A DNA stretch of 54,615 nucleotides, the filler included, from Bipalium vagum (taxonomy: Eukaryota), in assembly GCA_037834085.1 (NCBI GenBank). It is 3 parts of 3 records of this genome, joined end to end, with 100 filler letters (N's around TTAATTAATTAA, not from the genome) between each part and the next. Parts side by side here need not be neighbours in the genome. Positions count along the whole stretch, not along the records: positions 1 to 15,892 come from JBBMKC010139479.1; 2 more parts are not named here. One strand, 5' to 3'. The notes beneath the pieces were generated by a model. The model saw nothing but the letters and a program-made list of their open reading frames with translations, ran no database searches and had not been told where the DNA came from. A program made the position numbers and the translations under genes. Shown here piece by piece: positions 129 through 13,137 of the stretch; positions within the stretch are counted from its first letter, which is position 1; every line of letters begins with the position of its first letter.

Positions 129-259
129 TATATAAATGAAATAAAATGCATAAATAGAAATGAAAAATCTGGTTATAATGCTAAAGTATTTAGATCGAGT
201 ACACTTGAGTTAACTAAAATGATTAACTCTAATAATATATCTCTTAGTTGAAAATTATT

Positions 260-426
260 CGGAGATACCGGATTCGAAAATTTTCTTTCAATCTCCCTCT
301 GATATAATCTCCTTCCATCTGATTGGCTGATCTCATTACATAATATATTATTTAAACGGCACATTTTCAATTCAATTAGACCCTTCACATGCGCATGGAC
401 TGCCCTGACCGCTGAGCTAGATCCCC
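260..426 (-). pseudogene. Interrupted tRNA-Ala-derived sequence (tRNA nt 1-48, 100-bp insert, T-loop and 3' acceptor strand)
   Basis: Minus 426-379 reads GGGGATC TA GCTC AGCGGTCA GGGC A GTCCA TGCGCAT GTGAA GGGTC, which fits tRNA numbering 1-48 with an A box and CGC at the anticodon position. Minus 278-260 reads TTCGAAT CCGG TATCTCC G and pairs with GGGGAT, including the G3-U70 Ala determinant. The anticodon stem is degenerate. Confidence 0.7.
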
Positions 427-450
427 AACTAATTTTCAATTTATCTCACA
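276..450. repeat. ~175-bp direct repeat, copy 1 (copy 2 is split between 5079-5144 and 6541-6636)
   Basis: aaaattttc..caatctccctctgat.taatctccttccat.tgattggctgatctcattacata recurs at 5079-5144. atatattatttaaacggcacattttcaattcaattagacccttcacatgc..actaattttcaatttatctcaca recurs at 6541-6636. Confidence 0.95.
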
Positions 451-564
451 TCTCACTCCTTTAAAGCTTACATCCAGACTCTTAACCGCCCCGAGTCTCT
501 TTATTTCCATTTCCATTCCATTACTTTACTTTTTCACTTTTACTTTTTTTTTTTACTTTTTTTT

Positions 565-3500
565 CCAAATATTCTAGGAAGACAGTCAACGAGAACATGA
601 GACAGCGTCTCCTCCGGTTTATTGCATCTTCTGCATCCTCGGAACACTGAACCGCGATGAGCATTAATCTGAATATAATAAGATCGTGTACAGTGGATGA
701 AATACTAAGTGACAATTGATATTTCACCGTTGAAAATTGGCGTTGTTGAAAGCGTCGACTGACCGATTGACGAAACGAAGCAACCTGCACTGGATTGAGA
801 ATTCCATCTGTCGTTCCATGCGTGTTTCACGAGATTGTGGAGAACTTTGTATATTATCTTTGAGTCTCTGGGTTTAATGATCCCCTTGTTCTGATAGCTT
901 GAGTGAAAATGTTGGAAGTACTTCAAACAAATGCCATTTTCATTCTTTTTGAAATTGATTGATATTTTATGGCGTGATTTTATTTGATTAATGGTTGAAC
1001 GTGTCTTTTTCCACCATCAATTTTGAAGACATTGAACATCTCTTTGATTCAACCATTCAAAAGCCTGTTCTTTTGAGACTTTCTTGCCCAAGCCTGGATT
1101 TGAAGGAGCAGAAATTAGCGAAGAAATTGAGATGCGTCTGATGAGTTCGTCGGAAGAGTTGAAAAGTTGAAACACATTTGCAATTGACTGCAGTATTCAT
1201 CAACAATAGAACCAATACCTGCTCCGAAATGAGATTTCGGTGTATACATGTATTTTATCGATGACCGAATACCAAGAACAAGGATACTTTTCAACTGACG
1301 CCGAATATTAGGCTCTATTGCATTTTTCCCTTGTGTGATTTCATTAAAAGTGATGTAATTGTTCCGAAAAGCAAAGATCATTTTAGAGCGAATGAAGACA
1401 TGATAAGCATTCAATTTCTGCCAAGGATAGAGAATGCTATCAGCGATCGTTTTCAGTTCATGTATGATTTATGCAAACAAAGATCTCGATGGAGAATGGA
1501 GATTTTCACAGAAATCAACATCCAAGTAGCGATAGGTTTCATCAACCGTCATAGTACCAATAGGAAATTCACCAATTCTCAAAGCGAATGCATTTGGAAC
1601 TTGAGGGACGAAAAAACAAAAGCACACTTTGAGGGCCGGAATTTCAAGAGGAGCCATGATAATACCTGAACTGCACGATTCAGGAGGTCTTCTATATGTG
1701 AACAACCGGTAGCTAAAAGTACGACATCATCTGCATATGCAAGCGCTCAACTGATATTCACGAAGCAGTACACCGCCGCTCAACACCGCACATGAAATAC
1801 GATTGGCAGTTTCTATATAAAGCTTCAATCAATTAACATGATTGAGAGCCAACACTCATTCACCGAATACAACCAGTAATGAAGAAAATATCAATACTGC
1901 CGAAAGCATCAGCTACATCGAGAAAATCAATATGCAGAGGCATATTCAGTTCTCTCCGATGTCGATCAATTAAGTCTTGAAGAAGAAAAAAAACGGACCA
2001 AGGCTCTTTTGCATCGGATGTAAAAGATTATTGGCATTCAACCAACCAGAAAGTTGTAAAGATAAAGCGTAAGCGAATATCTTATATGAGCATTCAAGTG
2101 AAGCAATTGGTCGTCATGAATTGATATCATGGTACTCTCCTTTTATCATTGGCTTCGAAATAATCAAGGTAGAAAAAGACTTCCAGCGAGAAGGAAGAAA
2201 TAAATCGTCAATTATTCTGTTGAACATGGATTTTTAGCAACGGATCACAGTATTTGATGTCAGCATAGATGATGTTCCTAATACCTGGAGCTGAATTCTT
2301 GCAGGATTTTAAGATTTTCTATAGTGAATCACATTCAATTAAGTGGAAATCGAATTGTGATCTTTGTTTAATAAGATTAAATTGAGACCAGTCACAAGAT
2401 GGTGGATACACTGATTTTTGTTTGTAATATCCGTTAATCTCATCCATAGACGGTGTGCAATCCGCAATTGTCGTGTCTACAATAATTTTGAAAGCTGTTG
2501 ACGGAGTAATATGATAAATTTTCCTCATATTAATATCCCTGTGACCTTTCACTAGACATTTTACCAAGAAATACGTTTTTCTCCTTAATCTGCCTCAATT
2601 CATAAATGTAGTTGACTAGTCTATTATCAAATTCGTTGTTAGAAAGGTTTTGCTATAAACAATCAGAAATTAAACTTTCAGCTATGGAAATTCAAGCAAC
2701 AAAAGTAAGAATTGGCTTAAAATTAGGAGATTTTGACATGGATTTTAGAATGCGATTTGCATTTGACCGAATAACATTACAGTTTACTCCGAAAAGTGAA
2801 GAAAAATGAACAAGACCCAACATCAGTTCACTAACAAGAGGTCCACTGTCCTTCCTATGCTTCATTTTCTGTTGTTCAGGTGTATCAAAAAAGAACGAAA
2901 ACAAAATTTGATCAAGAGAAAACAGTGTCACCAATCTTGCAATTGATTTCACTGACGTAGAAAAATCGGTTTTGCTTTTTTCGTTATTTAGATCAAGACA
3001 ATACACTATTTTATTAGAAAAGTTAACAACGAAAAGAATTCAATAATTTTCACTGCAAAAATATGGACACAAGACGAGTTTCTTATCTTTAAACATTTTG
3101 AAAGTTACATAGTCACTAATAAATTCCAAATTTTCACAAACAAGCACCTTACTTATCAAACGATACAAAACAAGGATTTCTCTATTATTAATGTAATGAG
3201 AGCAATACGACACAAGATGATCGTCCTTGAAATATAAAAGAGAGGAAACGTCATTTAAAGCTACGGAAAAAGATTTTGGATTTTTAAATATTGAAATTTT
3301 TTTTGAAGTTATAATATCAAGAGGAAGTTATTCGGAATTACCACGACCAGAATAAAGAGATTTGGTATTGAGAGAATTTTAATATTAAATGCTCTTTTTA
3401 GAATTTTAGCAATAAACTTTGGATAAATTACCAATTTATATGTATCTCAATGTTTATCAATCAATTGTAAACAAGTAACCACAATTGGTCCACAATCATA

Positions 3501-5078
3501 GCCATTGTTTTGTTTACTTATTTCCAATTGACAGTCAATTATTTCCACGTCGATTCCGAATGCCAAGTTCAAAGTCAAATTCAAAACTCCTATCTGATTG
3601 ATTAGAAACATATTCAGGCATGAATGGTTTCAGAAGAGGATCGAAGAAAAAGGAACTTAAGCTAATTTTACAATAGATAAAGGCAATTCAATTTTGAGTT
3701 AGAATTTTCAAAGGACAAAAAAGCTTTTCAGAGGAAAAGAATGATGAAAAAAGTTTTGGATAAAAATCAATGCCATTTGCAAGCCGAATAAAATCAGAGG
3801 ATTAATACAAAATGCCATACCATTAGACACATATTCAGAGAGATAACAGTGAATATCTGCATCTGTAAACAAGGAATTATATTTGAAAGTCTGGTTAGAA
3901 AGAGTTTCTCGCTTACTTTGTGCTATCTACACCTGTCAAATCGAGAAAATCTGAAAAAGTGTAGGCAATGATTTCAACAGGAAGAAATGCGAGTATTGAG
4001 CTGAACCATCTTCTGCCTAGTTCCAGCTGGGATTTGTGTGAAGATTGATGTCTAAACTGGAATTTTAGAAGGAGATTTGATTTTATTATCTGATTCATAA
4101 TTTTTATTTTCCCTCTAACGATTTCGGTAACCTCTGAATTATTATTGATTTTATTTTTAGGTTCCATTTCAGCACAACCCATTTCAATAAACTCTATTCG
4201 ATGCATTTCTTGCATATTGGAAAGCAGGTGGTTTCTGTCTTTAATAAAATAATTGGTTTAGCATCAGCACAAACTTGACAACAAGTTTTAATATTTTGAT
4301 TCTTATGCTCTATATCTTTGTCCCTTAATGGTGGAATTTTAAGAGCTTGATGAGTAATTTTTGGTCTTGCACAAAATGGAGTTTTGTCACAGAATATTTG
4401 TATTTTTTTCAAAAGTGTCTCCATTGTAGAGTTCACATCATTTTCTGAATCTGGCTTGAATTTTATAGAAGGGACCATATCCAAGTTAAATTCTTTAATA
4501 TTTCCTTTTAAAGTTGAAATTTTTTCTTTAAACATTAATGATAAAATTTATTTTCTAATTTTTCCCTTAAATCCCTCCCTTAAATCTGATATTTTAAAAG
4601 TTTTATTAAACGCTTTTGTTCATTAATATCGGAACAATTAATTTCGATTGTCTTTAAAAAGTCATTCAAACTTTTCTTTAATAATGGAAATAAGTCATCT
4701 GTGAAAGCTGATGATACATCCATATTTTACGTATGTAAAGGATTTCCTCCGAAATTGATTTCACAATTGCATCCAGAGTATCTAGAGTAGAAGCAATATT
4801 GGACGACTTCCTCTCGACTGATCTCGACAATCAAGGTATCATCTGATTGGCCTTCACCTGCTTGTCATTGGTAAGTAGATGATTACTCGAATTTGACAAG
4901 ACTTAACCAGAATTTGAGCAAAATCATCAACCAGAGGCATTTTTAAAAATCTTTGTTCACCATCACATTTGACGTCAACAGATTTTCTAGAAAAACTATC
5001 AGAGAACAGAAAAAATTGAGTCGAATATATCCTCAAGGTATTTCATAAAATCTGAAAACGAATTTTTCAAGATTTTTG
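565..5078 (-). mobile_element. Decayed non-LTR retrotransposon of the RLE group (NeSL-like): CxxC..CxxC finger, two Ulp1-like protease domains, RT, CCHC knuckle
   Basis: Minus-strand motifs across stops and frameshifts: CQVC..CKKC (~4200-4280); LFTDADIHCYL / FCPL..N*IAF..FFDPL / QNNGYDCG (3470-3880); a second similar domain (2810-3240); CKNSAPG (~2285-2305); AYADDVVL (1717-1740); HAWNDRWNSQSSAG; T*YFIHCTR; CRRCNKPEETLSHVLVDC (582-635). Confidence 0.9.
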
Positions 5079-5144
5079 AAAATTTTCATCCAATCTCCCT
5101 CTGATGTAATCTCCTTCCATATGATTGGCTGATCTCATTACATA

Positions 5145-6540
5145 TGTGGAGCATCCCACAATAGACATTTCTTTAACATATCCCATTTTGCTGTTTACTG
5201 ATTTTTATTTGATCAATAAATGTTATGATTTTTAGTAAATAAACATTTTTTAACATAAACTTACTTGGTATTAGATGCCGGGTGTTCATGATTGCTCGGC
5301 TCTCAGGACAAGGCCTGTTCATTGCACTGCGAACAGGCTGCCTCCTGCGCTCATCCAAATCGGGTGAGTCAAACACGTAATTTTTGATTGATTTAATGTT
5401 GTATTCATTTAAAGATGTATTGCTGATTATCAAAAAATTCTCTTTTAAATAATTATTACTATTGTTATTATCATTGTTATTATTAATTATAAATCATTAT
5501 TAGAAAAGTAATAAATAAAGAATTTATATAAAAAATAAAAATAGAAAACAATAGAAATAAAATTATAAAATTTGTTTAAAATATTTTTTAGATATATAAA
5601 AGTATAGTAATTTCTAAAAAAGAAATTACATATTACTAAAAATAATAATATATAAAAAATAAATAATATAAAAAGGCTTACCTAAGAGCATAAAAAACAC
5701 AATAAGAATCTCTCCATCGACAAGCAATACATAGAAAGGCCAAGAAATCGTTGATAAAACAAATCAGACAGCAGTAAATTAAACAGTGCAGTCACGTACA
5801 AATTCCAGTTAAATATCAAGGTGCACATTCCAAAACCCAAAAACAAATTCAAACACACTTGCATCACTGCCTATATAAGATAAATCGTTCAACGTGGTAA
5901 AAAGAAATTACAAACTGAATTAAAAGAATAGCCAAGGGTTAAGACAAGAAGGAGGTTAATAAACATAAACGAACACAAATACTTGAAGGTAAATCATTTG
6001 GTTATTATTGTTATTATTATCCTTATTTCAATTATTATTATATCGATTTATACTCTGTGAGAACAGAAGTATTAAATCTACATTTTATTAAAATAAATAA
6101 TCAATCACAGTTGCGCAATCTTAACCGATTGACGTAACTTTTAATTAATTTCTCTCGTAAATAACTACTCGGTGCTTCATCGTTGATCAAATAAAAGTTT
6201 TTTGTTTTTCCCTTTCTTTTTTGTTTAAAGTGTACACAGCCGCTAGCTGGTAAACTTCCTGAGGGCTTTAACACACTAGGCTAAGCCTGTGTTTAAAGAT
6301 TCTGATAAATCAGCACAAAATCTCAGTAACCCTTGTAATTAAAACTTTGTCGAAAAATTTATCAATAAAGATTTTATTTAAAAGCTGTGTTCTCTTAGTT
6401 TATTTTTGATCGACTTTTTATTTTGTATCAGTGATTATTTAGTGCTTCAAACGTTCATCCGTAAGTCCTTCTACAATTAAGTAACCTAAAGCAGAGTTAA
6501 GTCTTTTAAATTCAACCCATATTTTTAGGAACTTAACACA
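5145..6540 (+). mobile_element. Probable solo LTR (1.4-kb TG...CA insertion)
   Basis: It splits repeat copy 2 precisely. Ends are TGTG...CACA. There is a TATA-like ctatataag at ~5871 and AATAAA at ~6190. No convincing ORF, and the target duplication is unclear. Confidence 0.6.
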
Positions 6541-6576
6541 ATATATTATTTAAACGGCACATTTTCAATTCAATTA

Positions 6577-6612
6577 GACCCTTCACATGCACGCGGACTG
6601 CTCTGATCCCCC
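6577..6612 (-). pseudogene. Second tRNA-Ala-derived 5' half with D-arm deletion
   Basis: Minus strand GGGGGATC-AGAGCAGTCCGCGTGCATGTGAAGGGTC is homologous to 426-379 but lacks TAGCTCAGCGGTC. Confidence 0.6.
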
Positions 6613-9600
6613 GACTAATTTTCAATTTATCTCACAATAATATTTTTTACACATCAAATATAAAATCACATCCTTTTTGAATTATAAAAATGAAGTCAGT
6701 AAGCCTTACGAAGCCTTTTCATGCACATTAAATGTAAAATTAGTCAAATGTTTCAATTATTACTTTCGGAGAGCTGTCCTCATCCTCCATCAGCTTTTGA
6801 GGTTTTGTTGTTGTTTGTTTGAAGTAATCAGCAGTTCCTGAAAACTTTTGGTTGGAGGTTTGTGTGGGTTCAGTATGGGTTTTTATCAGTTTTGCTATAG
6901 CTTCCAACATATACATTCTTTTTCTATATCTCTTCGCCAATATCCTTCTAGTGGATTTTACACTGTCAAACACTTAAGGATATGGCTCCTATTTTAAAGT
7001 AACCACTCATTATTATTATTGTGGGGACTCCCAGGCCAACGATATGAAGATAAAAAATGAAAAAGAACCCTTATATGACATGACTTGTTTATGATCCAAA
7101 TATCTTATATGTGTGCATGTTCTTTTGATAACTTAAAAAACTATTCCTGATGTGATTCAATCCTTTGCATGATAAATCTGTATAAAAATGGAATTATTAT
7201 AATTTTTGGTAAATGTATAAAAAATGTTTTGGTAAATGTAAAAAAAAGAATATTGTAATTGCTAGTAAATCCTGTAAAATACAAATAAAATTCATTAAAA
7301 TTAAATAAATAATCAAAATATAAATAAAATTATAAAATTCAAAAAATATGGAAAAAATTAAAAATATTTCTAAAATTAGAAAAAATAATAATAATAATTA
7401 CTTAAAATAAAGTGATATTAAATTTAAATTAAATAGTCTCAATAAAAATATTTATAGAATATTTAAATTAATAAAAATATAAAATAAATAACAAATTTAG
7501 TATAAATATAAAACATTTATACAAACGAAGCACGACAACAATAAAGACGAGAATTTAGTCAGAAAATTAATTAGAAAATTCATAGAATAATCTGGTATCA
7601 AATTTCCAGCATTGTCAACAGAGAATATATTGGTATCAAATAGCAAATTAATTTGGATACGGAACTATCAGATCTGATAGATCATCTAGAGTTACCAGAA
7701 GATCCAATATATAAAGTAGCAACAATTCAATCAGGAAAACCAAAAAACCAAACAAAATAAAAAGGAAAATTAATCAATTTAAGCATAAACAATTCGTCCA
7801 AATAAACAAAAAGGAAAATTAGTTAAATTGATCGTAGTCAACTCGACCAGATAAAAGAAAGGAAATCAGTCAACTTGATCATCCAGAGAAGAACTGAAAA
7901 TACAGTTAATTTGATTATACAGGAAAGACAGCCGACATTTCTATTAAAGAAATTTATTCAACCTACGACAAAGCTTGTAATCAATTCCAAACGAAAAGCT
8001 AAGAATCTACTTAGACTCAGTCTGACGAACCTTTTTCACGACGTTAATATAACTAGCCAGAATAATATTCTATTAGAAAACTCGGTAAAAATCTAATAAT
8101 TTATATTTATACATATTTAAAAATAATTTAAGATTACTCCGAATTGCAATTTGATTTAAAATTGGACAATTCTTTTTCTAACTTGACTACAAGTTAGTAA
8201 ATCAATAATTAAATTAAATAACCAGTCAAAGTAAACGGATAGATCCCCGAATACTTTCGAATCATCAAATAAAATTTTCTTTTTTGTTCTTCCAATATTT
8301 TTTTTGCCTTCTCAACGTCAAGTAGGGCGGAGAGGCGCTTTTTACTTTTGAGGGCTCTTGAGGCTAGGTTTAGCGAAGAGCATAAACATTATTCTGATCC
8401 TTCTCCGGGATTTACTAACAAACTATTATTTGTTCAACAAAGTTTTTAATAAAGTTTTTAAATTTATAAAAAAGATTGTTTTGTTTTGTCTTAGTGATTA
8501 AATTTTTATTGAAGTCAAATTTAAGTTTTGATTCATATTATTTCGCACCCAAATTACAGTTACCCAGTCGATTTTCCAGAAATAACATATACAATAGCAA
8601 CCTTTCATATAAACAGAGCATGACACTCTCTAAATCCTTCTGAAATATACGAGTCGCGTTAAGTTTTGGAGAAATCTCGAGAATCCAAATTAATTAAAAC
8701 TTAATAAATCCAAACCTCCAAGAACTTAACACTTTATTTATTTTTAATTTTAAAAAATTAATTAATGTTTGCTTTGATTGCTAGTCTGAAACCAATTAGA
8801 TGAATTTGTGAATTGAACTGAAAAACTTTTGACTGATATACTTTTTGATATTGACTAATGATCAAGATTTTTTGATCAAATTGATTATAGATTGATCACT
8901 AAAATGAAATTTATTTCTCTTCCACTTTGATTCCGACTCCCACATTATTATCGATTATATTATTTTCATTATCAATTATTATTATAAAAATAAAAATAAA
9001 ATCACTTACAATGTGTGCATAAAAATAATCGATTAGAAATGGGAGTGAGATTGAGCATTTTAACTCGACATTGGTCTAATATCCTCAAATAAGACTCATA
9101 AACACAGTGGGGAAATGCCTGTCTCAAAATTTTCAGACAATTAAGGTGGAATTAATGGGCTATCATGGGAAATATCTTTCCAAAGTGGAGATTGGCAGTT
9201 GTGGATCAATCTCTACTGCTATATAAAGCAAAATTTCGTCTAGAAATTGTTTTTAAAATTATTTAATTTGAAATTATTGGATTGGTTGAATATTAGAAGA
9301 TTGTGTTGATGAGATTATAAGAAAAATTGTTTGTTTAGGAAACCAGAAAGTTATTGCATTAAGAGAGGTAATTCATTCAAGTCAGAGTTAGAAGTTATCG
9401 TCAGAAAATTATTTCCATTTGCGTCAGAAGAATTGGACCGTTTTCTTCTCACGTTTATGTCCTTATTTTCATCCTCATGAAATTTCAATTGGTCACGTAG
9501 AATTAAAGAATCCTAGGTGACAGAACAGGACCTAGCGGGTAATCCGGGAAACCGTTGAGCGCTCTGGTGAGTAATGTATATTGTTTCATTTTTCTTCTAC

Positions 9601-12638: not shown

Positions 12639-12879
12639 TCGAAATATGAAAACATAAATAAACCTAGTTTTATTTGTTTAAACAAATTTTTAAAAACAAT
12701 TATAATTAAAACTTATTAAATATTGAATTCTTGGATTATGCTATATATATTGTTTTAAATAGTTTACCATAGTACTGAATTTCCAATTTATTCAAGAATC
12801 TTTATCTTAGTTTAAAAAGTCATTTAAAAAGTATTACATAATTTATAAATATAATATATAAACTATTTAATACAATATA

Positions 12880-13126
12880 CAGTTGAGTCTCGATATAACG
12901 AACCTGTGTGAAACAAATGGTTGGCCGCACATCATATATATACAAATTAAACTTTGATACAGCAAATTTTGATATAACGAAAGTTTCGATATAACGAAAT
13001 TTTATGAAACATTTAAATTTACGAATTTTAAATTTACATAATATGTATACTTCAATTTAACGAAACTTTGACATAACGAAGTAATTTGATCGGTCCCTTG
13101 AAATTCGTTATATCGAGACTGAACTG
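12880..13126. mobile_element. pogo/Tigger-like MITE
   Basis: TIRs CAGTTGAGTCTCGATATAACGAA / TTCGTTATATCGAGACTGAACTG, with TA on both sides and internal (cg)atataacgaa repeats. Confidence 0.9.
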
Positions 13127-13137
13127 TATATTGCACA

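Follow-up and report, generated by a model that had tools for sequence, protein, structure and literature searches.

The 54,615-nt stretch of Bipalium vagum DNA considered here, which joins parts of three records of assembly GCA_037834085.1 and which we call the window, contains between positions 242 and 6636 the decayed remains of a retrotransposon that lacks long terminal repeats (LTRs; non-LTR), bracketed by two sequences resembling tRNA-Ala. Our overall reading, in which we have high confidence, is that this region holds a dead copy of a restriction-like endonuclease (RLE)-group element, inserted at a fixed site in the upstream LTR of a Helenus-type terminal-repeat retrotransposon in miniature (TRIM), and that a segment of about 100 bp from the element's 5' end, designated X, was copied locally. 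The window has a G+C content of ~30%, and the assembly comprises 440 Mb in 272,664 contigs. Most loci were read from 90 genomic stretches, and the later genome-wide counts come from pattern searches.

Repeat searches of the window recovered three long direct repeats on the minus strand: 338-408 against 6536-6606 (71 nt, 93% identical), 423-450 against 6609-6636 (28 nt, 96%), and 273-342 against 5075-5144 (70 nt, 93%). The remaining window repeats are short, AT-rich, and at most 85% identical, and the repeated minus-strand layout (Table 1) is real and far beyond chance. An earlier sequence-only reading had noted the same tRNA-like breakpoint twice; the parts at 426-379 and 6612-6577 do both end in ..GTGAAGGGTC, at tRNA position 47/48, and positions 278-260 are, as it had stated, the T-loop and 3' acceptor strand, with the G3-T70 pair (G3-U70) read directly from the sequence. 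Its description of X as a 100-bp segment holds for the contiguous downstream copy; the upstream copy is split into ~37 nt (6576-6540), an insert of ~1.39 kb, and the last 70 nt (5144-5075). The upstream tRNA-like part (6577-6612) has a 12-nt internal deletion. The repeat also covers 24 nt lying 5' of the tRNA-like part (6636-6613 and 450-427), a stretch that tRNA genes would not be expected to have in common; the leader at 6613-6636 stands ahead of the tRNA-like part in dozens of copies across the genome.

Table 1. Components of the insertion and its surroundings at positions 242-6636 of the window, in minus-strand order.
Positions	Strand	Feature	Basis or remark
6613-6636	-	Leader of the upstream unit E, starting TGTGAG	96% identical to 427-450
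6577-6612	-	tRNA-Ala-derived 5' part of upstream E, ending ..GTGAAGGGTC at the insertion site	Repeats, alignment
6540-6576	-	X-a, the initial ~37 nt at the 5' end of the reverse transcriptase (RT) element, in the private short form TAATTGAATTG-AAAATGTGCCG	Alignment with L062-L065, L067, L089
5145-6539	+	Nested 1.39-kb retroposon of another repeat family, inside X	Genome search; boundaries good to a few nt
5075-5144	-	X-b, remainder of the start of the element's 5' untranslated region (UTR); CCAAT at 5128-5124	93% identical to 273-342
562-5074	-	RT element body, broken by numerous stops and frameshifts	Comparison with other copies
~3872-3450	-	Ulp1-like protease region within the element body; NGYDCG at ~3490-3470	
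~3213-2695	-	Second, degenerate protease-like region of the element body	
~2430-1340	-	RT of the element body; YADD at ~1735	
~640-578	-	CCHC motif of the element body	
451-561	-	3' part of the TRIM internal region: A-rich (GTAAA/GGAAAT)-like tract, gactcggggcggttaag.., and purine tract (462-451) abutting the downstream LTR	
427-450	-	Leader of downstream E (3' LTR)	Repeats, genomic copies
379-426	-	tRNA-Ala-derived 5' part (48 nt) of downstream E	Repeats, genomic copies
279-378	-	X alone, the RT element's initial ~100 nt, running straight into the T-loop; CCAAT at 326-322	Repeats, alignment
242-278	-	T-loop, 3' strand of the T-stem, 3' acceptor strand and trailer of downstream E, ending ..CAACTAAGA	

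A genome search with window positions 255-455 gave 1,624 first-look candidates. Their common unit, E, is ~113 bp long and is made up of a 24-nt leader starting TGTGAG, a 72-nt pseudo-tRNA, which we take to be closely like animal tRNA-Ala, and a 17-nt trailer ending CTAACA. Leader and trailer are common to more than 1,000 copies, and the intact T-arm region of E was found at 1,175 genomic places (≤3 mismatches; reversed control, 0). Intact E copies elsewhere score 33-46 bits on the Rfam tRNA model, with the anticodon arm left unmodelled. ARAGORN called no tRNA anywhere in the window, none when the 5' half is joined to the T-loop and acceptor strand, and none for most copies of E. The target is thus not the tRNA-Ala gene that had been proposed, since no complete cloverleaf was called and the flanks are shared by the many copies of E. 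The leader of E pairs with its trailer, extending the acceptor stem by 13 bp to a 20-bp helix (-36.3 kcal/mol, z -3.8; L013:1002-1108 on the minus strand, and other E copies).

The ends of E are TG..CA, and in 7/7 solo copies with both ends present, 4-5 of 5 flanking bases match (control maximum, 3). E also occurs in pairs around a core of ~130 nt, in loci L011, L017, L033, L047, and others. The core opens with TGGCGACCACACCAGG.. immediately 3' of the CA end of the upstream E, a sequence like a primer-binding site (PBS) in being the complement of a tRNA 3' end, and closes with a purine tract (AAAGGAGGGGGA) immediately 5' of the TG of the downstream E; the complete E-core-E unit in L017 has TAAAT at both flanks. 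Given the TG..CA ends, the 5-bp target duplications, and the pairs flanking a core with PBS and purine tract, we conclude that E represents the LTR of a miniature LTR retrotransposon of the Helenus type, a dispersed repeat with more than 1,100 copies. The features of a Helenus-type TRIM (TRIMp3) were found for E in L011, L017, L033, and L047, and the window retains the purine-tract side only. What had been described as an A-rich spacer (561-451) is not the tail of a long interspersed nuclear element; it is the 3' part of the TRIM core, and the same sequence is found 5' of E in L011, L014, L017, L033, L035, and L047, whether or not the RT element is there. There is also a second LTR subfamily, very uniform and ending ..GTGTCTCCAATTTATTTGAACCTAACA, which was found at 214 exact places; it too is occupied by the RT element, and many of its places lie ~30 nt from where a contig stops, a position that young, high-copy repeats would lead one to expect.

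The position of the RT element within E is fixed. At 16/16 loci holding the 3' end of the family, ..AATACAATTTTGTTC runs into GTTCGAATCC and the remainder of E, beyond which lies either unrelated DNA or TRIM core. The 3' junction pattern was found at 418 genomic places, and the join to E-specific sequence at 313 (reversed controls, 0). Exact junction matches numbered 157 (reversed control, 0); all 100 of the 100 junction flanks listed are E or the second LTR subfamily, and no host tRNA gene is among them. The DNA past the second LTR subfamily, like the flanks outside E, varies from locus to locus, and these differing outer flanks indicate independent insertion sites. Genome searches with the 5' end, the middle, and the RT/3' part of the element gave 84, 246, and 865 first-look candidates, respectively, and the element is 5'-truncated in most copies; eight loci have truncated copies of 667-2,533 bp lying between E(1-~69) and E(76-107). 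The 5' junctions scatter over a few bases (tRNA positions ~40-50), with the 3' junction fixed, and in several subfamilies (70-86% identical) every full-length copy lies against the leader and tRNA 5' part of E. With 313 occupied sites against 1,175 intact T-arms, about a fifth of the E copies that can be detected are occupied. Alignment of the flanks of the copies on this shared 3' junction thus upholds the proposal of site-specific insertion where the T-arm of a tRNA-Ala-like sequence begins.

All copies that were read are bracketed by two parts of E, as they would be if E and the RT cassette formed one mobile element with no target specificity, the short E copies being internal-deletion derivatives of it. 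We regard such a composite unit as highly improbable. Intact E restores a continuous T-stem-loop, with the tRNA-model scores given above, which a deletion would not recreate; copies truncated at many internal positions join E at the same few bases; and E possesses a PBS and a purine tract of its own, along with 5-bp duplications. Furthermore, relatives from other samples lie against tRNA-like sequences other than E, at that same position.

Two intact relatives bear on this last point. In L091 (JGI 3300033082; 4495-5160) the element ends ..AAATACATATTTGTAA and is followed by GTTCGATCCTCACTCGGGGCA, and in L092 (Logan SRR12893711; 5555-5655) it ends in ..GGTTGGGTTCAAATC, where the contig stops; in each case the end lies beside the T-arm of another tRNA-like sequence. 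Since both end like the family in the window, we conclude that the T-arm break point is conserved in the lineage and that the tRNA-like partner differs. L091 also shares the 3'-terminal motif AAATACA..TTTGT with the window family, and a long upstream open reading frame is present in L092 (503 aa) and in L095 (607 aa). A single case of another kind was seen in L077 (contig C236167), where at 991-1070 on the minus strand a tRNA-Leu(TAG) is intact up to GGGTTCGAAT, is cut in the T-loop, and gives way to AT-rich filler; ~60 nt past the cut tRNA lies the 5' region of a copy from a 72%-identical subfamily of the RT element. L077 may represent an insertion into a true tRNA gene.

The element in the window is riddled with stops, and other copies, 80-91% identical to it, are broken too. 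RVT_1 was matched at 90.4 bits on L037:2148-3236 (minus strand), a domain also present, interrupted by stops, in the window copy. Among solved structures in the PDB, the best matches of the RT are R2 proteins (4e-23), followed at ~1e-12 by L1 ORF2p; a search of a protein atlas returned generic RT clusters only. After the CCHC motif, other copies continue into an RLE region, in which the motifs ..RIDL.., ..IDVK.., and ..HYK.. are kept, and then into a 3' UTR of ~230 nt. A C-terminal piece (L033:2280-3296, plus strand) aligns to R2 residues 950-1118, in the RLE region (1.2e-5), with the D..D..K positions kept, and to residues 967-1258 of relative P0073, a region comprising CCHC and RLE (3e-55). 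An exhaustive protein search recovered intact relatives of 1,000-1,350 aa with 37-47% identity. The assignment to RLE-group non-LTR retrotransposons made in the sequence-only reading was borne out by these RT, CCHC, and RLE matches, together with the 5'-truncated copies and the fixed 3' end.

The N-terminal part of the element was pieced together from decayed copies. Pfam searches with N-terminal and middle pieces gave weak matches to CE-clan proteases (RickCE_cat, 0.0012; Peptidase_C48, 0.1), the protease motifs HW..D..Q.NGYDCG are readable in translated pieces, and the protease piece matches the P0073 protease at 2e-8. Peptidase_C48 lies upstream of RVT_1 in 4/8 relatives scanned (P0073, P0075, P0077, and P0082; 29-81 bits). 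No Exo_endo_phos match was found in any piece or in eight full-length relatives, the element's own N-terminal region being seen in broken pieces only. On the basis of RVT_1, the alignments to the RLE regions of R2 and P0073, the P0073 protease match, and Peptidase_C48 in relatives, the architecture is one or more Ulp1-like proteases, RT, CCHC, and RLE. A protease upstream of RT and RLE has been reported for NeSL-1 and Utopia-1_TSP (PMC4640811). The second protease-like region (window ~3213-2695, minus strand; L047:153-554, plus strand) has NYW for NHW and DSG for DCG and, to judge from these replacements, is probably inactive; two Peptidase_C48 stretches are also present in P0073. A match of this second piece to the putative methyltransferase 3i9f (1.5e-5) was set aside as probably spurious, because the glycines that bind S-adenosylmethionine are unmatched. 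A PDB search with another piece of the protease region gave nothing useful.

Compared with other copies, the window copy lacks ~1,060 nt at ~4727 and ~100 nt at ~1786, as well as everything past ~562; the RLE and the 3' UTR are gone, and of the CCHC-RLE end the CCHC alone is left. This copy is dead, a relic in decay of which no function is expected. As to the activity of the family, the position of the nick, and the details of target-primed reverse transcription (TPRT), we infer these from family knowledge.

The origin of X could be decided by comparison with other copies. In L002-L004, L065, and L089 X runs unbroken into the 5' UTR of the element, and intact E copies, of which there are more than 1,100, are without X. 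X is therefore the element's own 5' end and not target DNA. The CCAAT box of X (CCAATCA), kept in ~17/21 copies across subfamilies, suggests an internal promoter. The identity of X defeats one of the two models put forward in the sequence-only reading, in which a single insertion made a target-site duplication of ~175 bp comprising the tRNA 5' half and X. The repeated block does flank the element in direct orientation, as that model would have it. The model is nevertheless scarcely credible, given that X continues into the element's 5' UTR beside other E copies, that complete copies elsewhere have no long duplication, just E(1-~69), the element, and E(76-107), and that the 3' end of the window copy is no element end.

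The other model held that neighbouring targets were hit independently at the same site, the downstream insertion then collapsing to X at TTC microhomology. In this it was right that X is the 5' UTR and that a microhomology of the TTC type exists at the join between X and the T-loop, and a double hit is not absurd, the target site being present in both LTRs and about one in five E copies being occupied. The details of the two window copies argue otherwise, and we consider two independent hits improbable. When the window stretches flanking the nested insert are set end to end, both copies of X share the junction of GGGTC with TAATTG and a 20-nt gap form that, among the copies examined, is private to them; 5' junctions and 5' ends vary among copies in general, yet this pair has an identical junction and the same private shortened form. 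Moreover, the window pair is 93-96% alike over the shared repeats (88% for the X pair in an alignment extending beyond the divergence point of both copies), whereas the downstream X is 77-89% identical to any other copy. Because of the shared junction and private gap form, it is reasonably probable, if well short of certain, that the two copies of X go back, by whichever path, to a single insertion. The X/T-loop join (270-293) is found once in the genome, at a TTTTC(G/A)AA microhomology. We also considered whether the leader, tRNA 5' part, X, and T-loop together form a propagating LTR variant, and rejected this because the join is unique in the genome.

A history consistent with these observations can be proposed. 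The family would insert by TPRT at the 5' side of the T-arm of the E pseudo-tRNA, just before GTTCGAATCC, and the element would have landed in the upstream LTR of one TRIM. The downstream LTR would then have received the leader, the tRNA 5' part, and X from the upstream LTR, most simply by gene conversion, with the local copying ending at the TTTTC(G/A)AA microhomology with the T-loop. A later deletion would have taken the RLE and 3' UTR of the element, what was left of the upstream LTR, and that side of the TRIM core which carries the PBS. Other late events would be two internal deletions of smaller size and the arrival of the 1.39-kb retroposon in X. The order and mechanism of the local copying and of the deletions are what we infer, as are the promoter function of X and TPRT itself.

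Several points weigh against our overall reading. No recognisable common 5-bp target duplication surrounds the two E copies of the window (ATTAT versus GATAT), so that these are only putatively the two LTRs of a single TRIM insertion, and the window has lost the TRIM's PBS side. Among the 90 genomic stretches read, none holds an intact copy of the family. The placement of the element in a clade is provisional, drawing on its architecture and its similarity to unlabelled relatives. Finally, the region could have arisen in assembly, with two different insertions of the family fused into one chimeric contig by the repeat sequence they have in common; the assembly is very fragmented, and E and the element are both high-copy. 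We think this quite unlikely, however, for the X/T-loop join is unique sequence and no repeat-to-repeat join, and the copies differ at 4-7% of shared-repeat positions, unlike what a collapse would give. Independent contigs of one public run hold all sampled words of the neighbouring stretch, a comparison that is silent on 242-6636 itself.

Sequence-specific RLE elements with targets inside tRNA sequences have been described in the NeSL clade, namely NeSL-1_TV (tRNA-Pro) and the planarian families LIN15_SM (tRNA-Arg) and LIN25_SM (tRNA-Glu) (Kojima & Jurka 2015, PMC4640811). The window family resembles these in encoding an RLE and in being sequence specific within tRNA sequences, and it shares with NeSL and Utopia-1_TSP a Ulp1-like protease upstream of the RT, present in the family and in its nearest relatives. 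It differs from the NeSL-clade tRNA families in its site, the start of the T-arm, and in its substrate, a tRNA-Ala-derived LTR of another retrotransposon; the published planarian junctions fall at other points of the tRNA, and their 3' ends are not those seen here (S6 Fig, PMC4640811). The suggestion that this might be an undescribed site-specific family therefore stands as regards the target, which is new, and needs qualifying in that tRNA-gene-specific families of the NeSL clade were published in 2015 (PMC4640811). As in R2, the 3' junction of the window family is fixed, its 5' junctions vary and come with small losses of target, and its copies are often 5'-truncated; R2 is also the best solved-structure match for both its RT and its C-terminal CCHC/RLE region. 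Unlike the window family, R2 is specific for 28S rDNA and has no Ulp1-like protease, and RT identity between the two is low, with E-values of ~1e-23. Rotifer R9 is likewise an RLE element; in contrast to R9, the window family makes no long target duplication, and the repeated block holds the element's own 5' end.

Helenus elements have short LTRs containing a pseudo-tRNA with A and B boxes, a PBS, a purine tract, and many solo LTRs with duplications (Kojima 2024, PMC10886601), a description that fits unit E and its paired form. The target duplications of E are 5 bp, unlike those of animal Helenus, which are 4 bp (5 bp in fungi and plants; PMC10886601). RLE elements inserting into Helenus LTRs are not mentioned in PMC10886601, and we found no paper on an RLE element targeting Helenus-type LTRs, within a literature coverage that was incomplete.

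For comparison, tRNA genes are safe havens for Dictyostelium TRE and yeast Ty3 too, which integrate beside them through RNA polymerase III (Pol III) factors and not at a fixed internal base. Dada elements use tRNA genes as safe havens as well (PMC3706591, PMC8869645); unlike the window family, they are DNA transposons. The tRNA-like LTRs of Helenus-type TRIMs can likewise act as a safe-haven target, and the family described here is another sequence-specific RLE retrotransposon with a precise site, a natural model for targeted insertion, as R2 is. More speculatively, the lineage of RLE retrotransposons bearing Ulp1-like proteases might recognise the T-arm/B-box of tRNA-shaped DNA generally, being here a specialist parasite of tRNA-mimic LTRs that splits the Pol III A and B boxes, with occasional hits in true tRNA genes. 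We hold this only tentatively and think it rather less likely to be right than wrong; if general T-arm recognition were true, nature would here offer a system for insertion directed to the T-arm, and one transposon would be keeping another in check. There is also a risk for annotation, in that LTRs of this kind, whole or split in half, can pass for tRNA genes or fragments of them.

The retroposon nested in the upstream X (5145-6539, plus strand) belongs to an abundant family (1538 first-look candidates), the copies of which have a common end at 6535 and variable 5' starts. Near its 5' end, at 5257-5414 on the plus strand, is a U1-like small nuclear RNA sequence (Rfam, 77.3 bits, E = 5.4e-18), beyond which the Rfam search of the window gave chance-level matches only. 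The stretch corresponding to the part of U1 that pairs with 5' splice sites reads ACUUACUUG, against ACUUACCUG in the Rfam consensus, and one other copy of the retroposon (C6002) is without most of the U1 part. Elsewhere in the window, positions 12873-13133 form a 261-bp unit with 30-nt inverted repeats that are 97% complementary (CAATATACAGTTGAGTCTCGATATAACGAA ...), resembling a miniature inverted-repeat transposable element, with an internal repeat of ..TCGATATAACGAA.. motifs; at 7755-7852, a 49-nt unit occurs twice in tandem, the two copies being 76% alike.

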